DNA of 63,333 nt, counting the filler, from Olpidium bornovanus S191 (Eukaryota > Fungi > Olpidiomycota): the NCBI GenBank assembly GCA_017911155.1. It is 30 parts of 30 records of this genome, joined end to end, with 100 filler letters (N's around TTAATTAATTAA, not from the genome) between each part and the next. Parts side by side here need not be neighbours in the genome. Positions count along the whole stretch, not along the records: positions 22,366 to 24,627 come from JAEFCI010003427.1; 29 more parts are not named here. One strand, given 5' to 3'. The translations under genes were made by a program, and so were the position numbers. Within the stretch, counting starts at the first letter, position 1. Every line of letters begins with the position of its first letter. A model generated the notes under the pieces. The model was not told the DNA's origin. It saw only the letters and a program-made list of their open reading frames with translations, and did not search any database. Positions 22,366 through 24,627 of this stretch are shown piece after piece.

Positions 22366-23190
22366 ACTGTAACTCGTCGTGAGCGTAAGAACCAGTCAAA
22401 TGACAAGAAAGCGACGGTGACGACCGGTGAAACAAAAGGTACTTGCCACTCCCCGGACCATCCCAACGGCAGAGGCGACGGGCATGGGCACGGCTCGAGG
22501 CATCTGAGCGTCTCGACGATTGCAGTGGCTGCCGGGCCCCTAGGAAGCAGAGTTATGGATCAGTCCACGCGACACCGCGGCGGCCATATCCAAGGCTGCG
22601 CGCGCAGAGCGGTGCAGTCCCATTCCGGGAAGAACGATTCTCGGGTCTCGGACTCAGAGCGCCGGAAAGGAAGACAGGCGAACGCGAAGGGATGTCGGTC
22701 TCGAACGCAACGTGAACCGCTTGGTTCGTCCTTAACCAGCCCCGCCGGTGGGGTGAACCTTGCAGACCGTGCGTCTCCGGCTGTGAAACCGGCTGCCGCG
22801 CGACAGCGCTGCAGAGTCCAGGCGTGTTGCGCACGCGGCGGCAGCAGCGGCAGAACCGTGGCGGGCGGCGGCGTACGGAACGTCTTTGACGATCCGGAGC
22901 TCCTAGCGCCGCCGTCTCCGTTTGCGACAGCCATATCTCAGACGTCGCAAGGCCCGGACGGCGGGTCGGTGTCCCAAGCGCCTGGGCGTCCTCCTCTGTC
23001 ACCGTCGTTTCGCGATCTCGGAAAAAGACGCGGAAATTGGACAGAGGTTCCTGTCGTTCTCGAAAGACAGGACGAGATCTTTGACTTTTCGTCGCCCAGC
23101 CCCGACGATGCCGCACTGGCCGCGCATAAAACGCCGGACAACGGCGGCAAGCGCGTCGAGAAAGTCAAGGCCGCCGCAGCGCGAGGATGA
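22366..23190 (+). CDS. Ski7-like (HBS1 short isoform) terminal exon/retained intron of the HBS1 locus
   Basis: Frame open from contig start to TGA at 23188-23190; contains LLAPPSPFATAI (22900-22935) and IFDFSSPSPDD (23077-23109), the motif pair typical of Ski7-like HBS1 isoforms. Confidence 0.75.
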   Translation, partial: TVTRRERKNQSNDKKATVTTGETKGTCHSPDHPNGRGDGHGHGSRHLSVSTIAVAAGPLGSRVMDQSTRHRGGHIQGCARRAVQSHSGKNDSRVSDSERRKGRQANAKGCRSRTQREPLGSSLTSPAGGVNLADRASPAVKPAAARQRCRVQACCARGGSSGRTVAGGGVRNVFDDPELLAPPSPFATAISQTSQGPDGGSVSQAPGRPPLSPSFRDLGKRRGNWTEVPVVLERQDEIFDFSSPSPDDAALAAHKTPDNGGKRVEKVKAAAARG

Positions 23191-23430
23191 CATCGCGACG
23201 TGGACGGACGGCTGGAGCCGTGCCTTACCCCGCCGCCTCAGCCACGTGGATAGTCCGATTATTTTGTGCATACCCAGAATTTGCAACCAAGCACGCTGCA
23301 AAGAAACTCCTATTGACACGGTCCCTACGTCGCTTTTCTCTAAATCGCGTCCCACTTGATGTGGTATTGGGCAAACGGAATTGGGATGAACCTGCTTGGG
23401 TGCGTGTCACACCCCTTCGGGTCACCTCAG

Positions 23431-24627
23431 GCCAGAAGGGTGCCAAGCCAAAGCAGGGTAGCGCCGGGAAAGCAAAAGGCCAGCATTCGCTGCCGCCCGC
23501 CCCCTCGTCGCTCTCCCGGCAGGTGAAATCCGCGCAATCCAGTACAACCTCGCTGTCATCCGCCAAGCTCCCCGCGCCGGTGGCCGCGGCGAAAAAAAAG
23601 GAAGAGGAGCGGGAGCGCCAGAGGATGATTGCGGCGGCGGACGAGGAGGCAGAGGCCGAGGCGGCGAGGAGGAGGGGCGGCGAGGACATTGTGGATGATG
23701 ACGACGATCAAACGGACGACAGCCAATTGCTTTTCGACATGAGCGCACTCAATCTCGCTGCCTCTGCCGGCAAGCACGGGGAGACCGGGCTGCCGCCGCG
23801 GCCTCCGCTGCAACAGCAACAGTTCCCGCTCGCCGAGAGAAGGTCAATTCCCCGCGCTCAGTCCTGCGGCCTTGCCGCATCCGGAAACCTCGGGTCCGTG
23901 TCGTCTCTTTCCAGCTCGGCGGCGGGCTCGCCCAAGGGCAGTCCGAAATTATCCAGGCGCGTGAACATCGACGACGAATACGCTAAACGAGCTGTGCAGG
24001 AAGACAATATGAACTTTGTAGTCATTGGTGAGCTTGAAATCAATGTTGCCCGCTAGCGGAAAGTCGCCGGAGACCTTTCGTATTTTTTTCTTTTTGGCGT
24101 TCTCCGGTTGTGTCACTTTTTTGTTTGAGGAGTACTGTTTGTATATTGGGGTAGTTCGATAGATTTTTACGGGGTGTCGACGAATTCCATGATCGAGATC
24201 TCTAACTTCGGTTCTGGCTGTATCCCCGAAAACCTCAGGCCACGTTGACGCGGGCAAATCCACGCTGATGGGTCACCTGCTCTACAAACTGGGCCAGGTT
24301 TCGGAAAAGGACATGCGCAAGTTCCAGCGGGAGAGCGACAAAATTGGGAAATCCTCGTTCGCGTACGCGTGGGTGCTGGACGAGACGGACGAGGAGCGGG
24401 TTCGGGGCGTCACGATAGACGTGGCGACGGCGCGGTTCGTGACGCCCGTGAAGAAGCGGCGCTTCACGCTCCTGGACGCGCCCGGCCACCGCGACTTCAT
24501 CCCGAACATGATATCGGGGGCCAGCCAGGCCGACGTGGCGCTTCTGGTCGTAGACGCCACAAAGGGCGAGTTCGAAGCCGGGTTCCACTCCGCCGGCCAG
24601 ACAAAGGAGCACGCCCTGCTGGTCCGC
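23431..24627 (+). CDS. HBS1: HBS1 translational GTPase (exons 23431-24027 and 24239-contig end), partial
   Basis: NFVVIG|[14 protein letters not shown]...[27 protein letters not shown]...[38 protein letters not shown]...[11 protein letters not shown]; long N-terminal extension and HBS1-type residues distinguish it from eEF1A; intron 24028-24238 with a CTAAC branch point. Confidence 0.93.

Follow-up and report, generated by a model that had tools for sequence, protein, structure and literature searches.

A probable dual SKI7/HBS1 gene in Olpidium bornovanus, in which one donor is spliced to either of two 3' splice sites

Can a single gene of Olpidium bornovanus supply both the translational GTPase HBS1 and a Ski7-like adaptor of the exosome and, if so, which splicing decision separates the two products? 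This root-parasitic fungus belongs to the Olpidiomycota, a zoosporic lineage that is sister to the terrestrial fungi. The locus in question occupies positions 22366-24627 of the window, the whole stretch of 63,333 nucleotides (nt) that was analysed, and these positions are one whole contig of 2,262 nt (JAEFCI010003427.1) from the metagenome-derived O. bornovanus genome GCA_017911155.1. The assembly derives from non-axenic zoospores (PMC7865070).

Alternative splicing of a single SKI7/HBS1 gene is established in ascomycetes and basidiomycetes, where it proceeds via alternative 3' sites (Marshall et al., 2013, PMC3597508). Vertebrates produce a short, GTPase-less splice isoform, HBS1LV3/SKI7 (Kalisiak et al., 2017, PMC5389692; for zebrafish Ski7, PMC7924785), and the HBS1/SKI7 gene of plants contains a cassette exon, as in Arabidopsis At5g10630 (Brunkard and Baker, 2018, PMC6143672). 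An earlier note on the Olpidium contig, made from the DNA alone, had proposed that this early-diverging fungus has a dual HBS1/Ski7 locus, with a short form lacking the GTPase. The dual locus is now supported by splice junctions from one shared exon and by motif homology, and the open reading frame (ORF) of the observed Ski7-like mRNA does end before the GTPase exons. The contig is therefore read here as the middle part of a single SKI7/HBS1 gene, with upstream exon sequence and the remainder of the GTPase off the contig; a probability of roughly 0.68 is given to this explanation as a whole.

The RNA data are assembled contigs from two runs of independent studies, X1 and X14. Both are clearly RNA, as a 211-nt intron is excised exactly in each (24027/24239; a slash marks a splice site throughout). 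Set against these contigs, the locus comprises the following features:

22366-22438, + strand: 3' end of the shared upstream exon, unbroken in RNA contigs no. 1 of X1 and no. 6 of X14, both of which reach at least 326 nt further upstream
22439-22525, + strand: 87-nt GT..AG intron with donor AAG/GTACTT and proximal acceptor TTGCAG/, spliced out of the Ski7-like isoform (X1 joint 22438/22526, depth 41.3)
22439-23430, + strand: 992-nt GT..AG intron, removed in the HBS1 isoform by an in-frame join (X1 joint 22438/23431, depth 21.9)
22526-23190, + strand: Ski7-specific segment, which continues the frame of the upstream exon for 221 codons before a TGA (X1 contig 2, X14 contig 7)
22897-22938, + strand: putative SKI7-like motif of the Rrp43-docking type, ELLAPPSPFATAIS, aligning with the relatives' block pliApPSafAqfi
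23077-23133, + strand: putative Patch 4-like motif of the Csl4-contact type, IFDFSSPSPDDAALAAHKT, aligning with the relatives' block FaFDtPSPDDiVlaAqsk
23147-23152, + strand: hypothetical in-phase GC donor gcg/GCAAGC, which would fuse the Ski7 segment to exon 2; no junction in the contigs
23188-23190, + strand: TGA closing the Ski7-like ORF, unchanged in the RNA contigs of X1 and X14
23191-23430, + strand: 240 nt after the stop, kept in the Ski7-like mRNA but spliced out of that for HBS1, ending at the distal acceptor CACCTCAG/ (X1 contig 2, X14 contig 7)
23431-24027, + strand: HBS1 linker exon (exon 2), disordered but with conserved blocks, ending ...NFVVIG; the relatives' patch 4-to-G1 profile aligns with it from about 23526 onwards, at 47.6 bits (E 1e-14)
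24028-24238, + strand: 211-nt phase-1 intron (G/GTGAGC ... CCTCAG/) dividing the G1 motif; joint 24027/24239 at depth 61.6 in X1 and 8.7 in X14
24239-24627, + strand: start of the translational GTPase domain (GHVDAGKST ...), Pfam GTP_EFTU, E 1.9e-34, ended by the contig edge

The splice switch is directly visible in the X1 contig graph, in which contig 1 (22366-22438 and 326 nt upstream, depth 58.9) forks into contigs 2 and 3, both merging into contig 4 (exon 2, spliced intron 2, exon 3 and 552 nt further, depth 61.6). Contig 2, at depth 41.3, joins 22438 to 22526, skipping 87 nt, and is then unbroken and letter-perfect to 23458; contig 3, at depth 21.9, joins 22438 straight to 23431 and so skips 992 nt. 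All three X1 joints are GT..AG on the + strand. In X14, where intron 2 is likewise spliced, contig 7 spans 23019-23351 at depth 5.4, compared with 8.7 downstream. One donor (AAG/GTACTT, at 22438/22439) thus pairs with acceptor 22525 or acceptor 23430, and the switch is an alternative choice between these 3' splice sites. The isoform made with the proximal acceptor accounts for about two thirds of the transcripts in X1, roughly twice the HBS1 form, and the proportion in X14 is alike.

The coverage of 22526-23430 represents a specifically spliced isoform, not genomic DNA or bulk pre-mRNA, because depth is zero inside the 87-nt intron (22442-22517) and because the low-depth contig that retains intron 2 (24002-24182) is just 5.2 deep against 61.6, a rough unspliced background of about 8%. 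Two outcomes that would have undone a dual gene had been named in the earlier note. A separate gene with its own promoter for the Ski7-like frame is rejected, as through joint 22438/22526 the segment shares its upstream exon with HBS1, and the lack of any transcript retaining the region is contradicted by X1 contig 2 and X14 contig 7, which cover it.

Both joins preserve frame 1 of the upstream exon, which is the sole open frame within 22366-22438 (frames 2 and 3 contain stops). As the earlier note had it, frame 1 is open from 22366 to a stop upstream of the HBS1 GTPase exons; it holds 274 codons and ends at TGA 23188-23190, and the 220 codons of 22528-23187 stay open in just 0.2% of mononucleotide shuffles (P 0.002). 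The proximal join removes exactly 29 codons (22439-22525, intronic in both isoforms), after which frame 1 continues for 221 codons to the TGA. The distal join is in frame and runs on into the GTPase, the HBS1 exon-2 frame reading from one base before 23431. As the depths 41.3 and 21.9 sum to about 61.6, the Ski7-like mRNA seems to include every downstream HBS1 exon, although RNA ends are invisible in contigs.

Searches for the identity of the products were run exon by exon, and exons were joined only for stop counts and for 24 residues around the junction. HBS1 identity follows from the Pfam GTP_EFTU match on 24238-24627, which places the first ~130 residues of the domain on the contig; the closest proteins are HBS1-like, with 62-74% identity, and come from chytrids, Glomeromycotina, Mortierellomycotina, Mucorales and Kickxellomycotina. 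In known SKI7 proteins two short motifs contact the exosome: the SKI7-like motif (RxxxFxxxL in human, metazoan consensus A+PShFAahL) docks on Rrp43, and a second motif, Patch 4-like (PFDFxxxSPDDIVKxNQ, in plants IaPFKFDaPSPDDhV), contacts Csl4 (Kalisiak et al., 2017, PMC5389692; Brunkard and Baker, 2018, PMC6143672). The strings taken for them in the earlier note, LLAPPSPFATAI at 22900-22935 and IFDFSSPSPDD at 23077-23109, are at those positions, and both align with motifs of this type. A set of 119 HBS1 relatives was gathered via the GTPase part and then scanned: FxFxxPSPDD(I/V)V..AQ occurs 84-157 residues before G1 in 46 of the 119, and in 32 of those 46 patch 4 is preceded, at a distance of 33-98 residues, by LIAPPSxFAxxIF or a closely similar form. 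A motif profile of 74 positions was built from 32 early-diverging fungal HBS1/SKI7 proteins, with Olpidium left out, and applied to every piece of the contig's six-frame translation. Only frame 1 is hit, with 30.2 bits (E 1e-9) at residues 178-256 (22897-23133), and none of the other 52 pieces exceeds 0.8 bits; the two motifs, their order and their spacing are thus homologous to those of fungal SKI7/HBS1 proteins.

The first motif, ELLAPPSPFATAIS, keeps the Phe and the aliphatic residue at +4, with Pro in place of the basic residue. The Rhizophagus motif reads HIAPPSIFATSIF against LLAPPSPFATAIS in Olpidium, and the latter is near-identical to the glomeromycete APPSIFATSIF. The Phe of the first motif lies 53 residues from that of the second in Olpidium and 47 in human. 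The Patch 4-like motif, FDFSSPSPDDAALAAH, is located in the Ski7-like segment; the HBS1 isoform is without patch 4, and in exon 2 the motif profile finds no match (score -0.5). The relatives' post-patch-4 profile pairs exon 2 at 23505-23530 with the laAQSk tail of patch 4, which is probably a low-complexity coincidence. A degenerate second patch 4 at this place (QVKSAQSS) was considered and dropped, as the AQS tail alone aligns and the motif profile is negative there.

Outside the motifs the Ski7 segment stands alone. No Pfam family matched it, a word-index protein search with the 220-residue segment found nothing among proteins of 121-385 residues, and the same search with the motif region alone returned only the contig's own model, KAG5461586.1. 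This GenBank model was also the only match of an exhaustive HMMER search of 1.84 billion representatives, and a PDB sequence search with the motif half gave no match. Judged by sequence comparison, the segment as a whole is without detectable relatives and its conservation is limited to the short motifs, as is expected of a disordered region with short linear motifs.

What, then, is the distal acceptor? By exact exon mapping, a phase-1 intron lies soon after patch 4 in three relatives, one of them (Paraphysoderma) a candidate, at positions 8-20 residues after PSPDD. It measures 69 nt in Rhizophagus irregularis (L002:3386-3454), 15 residues after PSPDD, and 253 nt in Actinomortierella ambigua (L003:3527-3779), 8 residues after PSPDD; the Paraphysoderma candidate is a 69-nt phase-1 intron with a GT donor. 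The exon that follows it in the relatives encodes a K/P-rich stretch and then a (D)IAGLNL-like block, and the Olpidium acceptor at 23430, also of phase 1, is followed by a K/P-rich linker and later by FDMSALNL. The relatives' linker profile aligns inside exon 2 only and not in 23130-23430; in that alignment 23191-23430 shows no similarity to the relatives' linker, and GC content drops to 0.49-0.55 across it. On account of its phase, its position after patch 4, the K/P-rich linker and the confinement of the profile to exon 2, 23430 is most likely the acceptor of the conserved post-patch-4 intron. The comparison suggests an ancestral plan in early fungi of upstream exon, Ski7 exon with both motifs, phase-1 intron and linker exon, in which the Ski7 exon could be skipped; skipping it would give HBS1, matching the observed joint 22438/23431. 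In Olpidium the observed RNA retains the intron. From patch 4 to the Ski7-like stop there are 19 in-phase positions, and a GT donor is present at none of them; the only in-phase GT/GC site among them with a donor-like context, gcg/GCAAGC at 23147, is placed at the relatives' donor location.

Some further observations concern these relatives. The exon before the intron in A. ambigua is about 1,485 nt long (by tblastn), a multiple of 3, and may be a skippable cassette. In Paraphysoderma sedebokerense (JAHLJZ010000009.1, L007:1451-5117) two adjacent genes are annotated, encoding proteins of 359 and 474 residues. The 359-residue protein is without a Pfam match and ends 6 residues after a strong Ski7 motif block, KPFEFDTPSPDDVVLTAQSKKSG (39.7 bits); the 474-residue HBS1 GTPase starts 195 nt after it. 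A candidate intron, aaaaac/GTATTTA at 2798 to TTTGTTTTAG/ at 2866, would join both genes in frame, and the annotation has probably divided a single SKI7/HBS1 gene in two. At E < 0.01 the Ski7 motif profile found nothing in the HBS1 loci and 3-kb flanks of Podila horticola (L005) and Basidiobolus meristosporus (L006); in these lineages the motifs may be lost, diverged beyond detection or moved to another gene.

The preferred explanation is thus a dual SKI7/HBS1 gene in which the choice of acceptor gives either HBS1 or a Ski7-like protein that stops before the GTPase. Use of the distal acceptor 23430 produces the HBS1 mRNA, consisting of the shared N-terminal exon, the disordered linker and the translational GTPase, and its product, judged by homology, would deliver Dom34/Pelota to stalled ribosomes for ribosome rescue. 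Use of the proximal acceptor 22525 adds 221 in-frame codons, carrying LLAPPSPFATAI and FDFSSPSPDDAALAAH; with the stretch between patch 4 and exon 2 left in, translation would stop at 23188, 26 residues after PSPDD, and yield a GTPase-less Ski7-like protein. By analogy with yeast Ski7 and human HBS1LV3, this protein would tether the SKI helicase complex to the cytoplasmic exosome, binding the former through the shared N-terminus (off the contig; an HBS1_N domain in relatives) and the latter through the two motifs. The main Ski7-type product is probably a GTPase-less Ski7, as in vertebrates, because there is no in-phase GT donor, just the GC candidate at 23147, and because the RNA retains the intron; a minor long form would presumably not be made.

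A more far-reaching proposal, which falls a little short of an even chance, is that Olpidium turned an ancestral long fungal Ski7, made from a cassette and bearing the GTPase, into an HBS1LV3-like GTPase-less adaptor by losing the GT donor, which is now GC or dead. If true, this would mean that the Ski7 GTPase domain was lost independently, and by a different mechanism, within Fungi, and the domain would be dispensable for Ski7 function outside animals. Should the short product be a real Ski7, the locus would offer a natural experiment on the need for that domain.

Several observations weigh against a dual gene with a GTPase-less product. Contig assemblies drop rare variants and are without strand or end information. 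The raw RNA-seq runs X16 and X19, which carry the same species label as X1 and X14, contain zero locus reads among ~10 million sampled from each; they provide no test, and their label may denote a host or mixed sample rather than Olpidium. Downstream of the Ski7-like stop come an exon junction and a long 3' region, the layout of a target of nonsense-mediated decay (NMD). Third-position GC in the Ski7 segment is 0.63-0.65, without bias, against 0.73-0.87 in exons 2 and 3, and the first 115 residues of the segment are R/G/A/S-rich, unconserved and match nothing. The Arg of RxxxFxxxL is Pro in Olpidium, as it is in most early-diverging fungi. Finally, the motifs are fused to the GTPase in the annotated proteins of all relatives examined, and the in-phase GC donor at 23147, together with an HBS1 frame that is open over 23130-23430 (P ~0.05), leaves room for a long isoform.

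That the functional Ski7 is such a long, GTPase-bearing isoform is nevertheless unlikely. On this view 22526-23146, which is 621 nt or 207 codons long, would form a cassette exon, followed by a GC-AG intron at 23147-23430 (284 nt, phase 1), and the stop-containing RNA would be incompletely spliced or unproductive. This arrangement would reproduce that of the relatives, with their phase-1 intron 8-20 residues after PSPDD and motifs fused to the GTPase; gcg/GCAAGC is in exactly that phase and place, the joined frame is stop-free, the cassette length is a multiple of 3, and a rare junction could have been dropped by the contigs. However, the joint 23146/23431 is absent from the X1 and X14 contigs, X1 contig 2 is unbranched over 22526-23458 at depth 41, and the two observed paths already sum to the flanking depth. 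GC splice donors are, moreover, rare and weak in general.

Could the RNA made with the proximal acceptor instead be a non-productive "poison" isoform, which lowers HBS1 output via NMD and whose motifs are relics of a lost or moved Ski7 function? The position of the stop, with one or more exon junctions and over 1.4 kb of RNA downstream of it, would fit such a role, as would the missing codon-position GC signal of the segment, and a comparable unproductive retained-intron SKI7 transcript occurs in rice (PMC6143672). Yet both motifs are kept in frame, in order and in spacing, when measured against the distant-relative profile (E 1e-9), and a frame of 220 codons stays open (P 0.002); two studies, moreover, show this isoform at roughly double the level of the HBS1 form, which is unexpected for an RNA that is efficiently degraded. 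This alternative is accordingly improbable.

Recoding is a still poorer prospect. Here the Ski7-like mRNA would give an HBS1-frame product with the GTPase, either by reinitiation at gATGa (23187-23190), in which an ATG of the HBS1 frame (23187-23189) overlaps the Ski7-like TGA, or by a -1 frameshift within 23130-23187. The HBS1 frame is indeed open from 23130 via the retained 240 nt into exon 2, as in 4.7% of shuffles; but this is only marginally unusual, the peptide, rich in W/C/F/Y, does not resemble a normal protein and has no counterpart in the relatives' linker profile, and a look by eye revealed no canonical slippery heptamer. Eukaryotic ribosomes reinitiate inefficiently once they have translated a long ORF. 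The open frame and the overlapping ATG are rated as chance or the trace of a recent change, not as recoding.

The splicing model of the earlier note, in which a donor at 22379 (C/GTGAGC) or 22385 (C/GTAAGA) is joined to the acceptor CTCAG/ at 23430 and the Ski7-like form arises either because the whole 1.05-kb intron stays in or through a choice of donor, has next to no chance of being right: although both strings are present as good consensus donors in the right phase (phase 1), the contigs of two runs pass through them unbroken from 22366 to 22438, the sole donor seen is at 22439, and 22439-22525 (87 nt) is missing from the RNA. Its phase-1 acceptor is real and used, joined from 22438 to 23431, and so the in-frame HBS1 that it predicted does arise, by excision of 992 nt from 22439 rather than ~1.05 kb; the predicted junctions from 22378 or 22384 to 23431 appear in neither the X1 nor the X14 contigs, and the switch lies in two 3' splice sites at one donor instead of intron retention or alternative donors.

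The preferred reading, a dual gene switched at its acceptors, also exposes errors in the existing annotation, as the earlier note had anticipated for automatic gene calling. The GenBank model on the contig, KAG5461586.1, is one partial "hypothetical protein" of 641 residues that translates the 87-nt intron and bypasses the stop by an invented intron at 23164-23291; the model is wrong, fusing intron with exon, and is corrected here. Such loci are evidently mis-joined or split by annotation, Paraphysoderma being another case. Opposite-strand ORFs of 187 and 154 residues are rejected as by-products of GC-richness, since every RNA joint is GT..AG on the + strand. At 23500, in exon 2, the C of the genome is replaced by A in the X1 RNA contig, which changes Ala (GCC) to Asp (GAC), and the X1 sample therefore contains a slightly different isolate from that of the genome; the 935 nt of Ski7 segment and retained stretch are identical between X1 RNA and genome.

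Olpidium fits the SKI7/HBS1 family on every testable feature, combining the splice logic of ascomycetes with the vertebrate outcome, at which it arrives in another way. As in Lachancea kluyveri, Aspergillus nidulans and Saitoella complicata (PMC3597508), the same single 5' site is joined to a proximal 3' site for Ski7 or to a distal one for HBS1, and the alternative segment likewise lies in the disordered region before the GTPase. However, the ascomycete distal site is just upstream of motif S3, which is present in both isoforms, whereas both Olpidium motifs lie between the acceptors. The long ascomycete isoform also keeps the GTPase, whereas the long RNA observed in Olpidium stops before it (TGA 23188, in genome and RNA contigs); the ascomycete-type pattern of a patch 4/S3 downstream of the distal site and a frame into the GTPase is thus not found here.

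With HBS1LV3 the locus shares a short isoform without the GTPase that ends in a unique region with an F-x-x-x-L/I helix motif and then a PFDFxxxSPDD-type motif, although the Arg of the human RxxxFxxxL is replaced by Pro. The vertebrate short isoform has its N-terminus in common with HBS1, and the Olpidium upstream exon is likewise common to both forms. By contrast, an alternative exon 5 replaces the later exons in the vertebrate form, whereas the Olpidium RNA seems to keep the downstream HBS1 exons after the stop.

In plants, as in Olpidium, SKI7 or HBS1 is decided by including or skipping a segment with the SKI7-like motif. The Olpidium segment is bounded by two phase-1 acceptors and would become a plant-like 621-nt cassette if the GC donor were used, but the second junction of a cassette is not seen in the Olpidium contigs. 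Plant SKI7 keeps the GTPase, and patch 4 of Arabidopsis lies just after the cassette-encoded sequence, whereas that of Olpidium lies within the segment.

Also comparable are the long HBS1/SKI7 models of other early-diverging fungi, for example Rhizophagus irregularis, Actinomortierella ambigua and Batrachochytrium dendrobatidis. They have the same motif order (LIAPPSxFAxxIF, 33-98 residues, FxFxxPSPDDxVxxAQ), the same linker blocks and the GTPase, with a phase-1 intron after patch 4 in two of the three; but their ORF reaches the GTPase 84-157 residues after patch 4, whereas that of Olpidium stops 26 residues after PSPDD, with no GT donor. Together with the phase-1 intron of glomeromycete, mortierellalean and blastocladian genes, the Olpidium locus points to an early-fungal, skippable Ski7 exon holding both exosome motifs. 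RNA-supported SKI7/HBS1 alternative splicing is thereby extended to the Olpidiomycota, a lineage outside the species covered by the work cited. The type of gene is already known; what is new is this RNA-supported olpidiomycotan case and, possibly, a GTPase-less fungal Ski7 that arose by donor loss.

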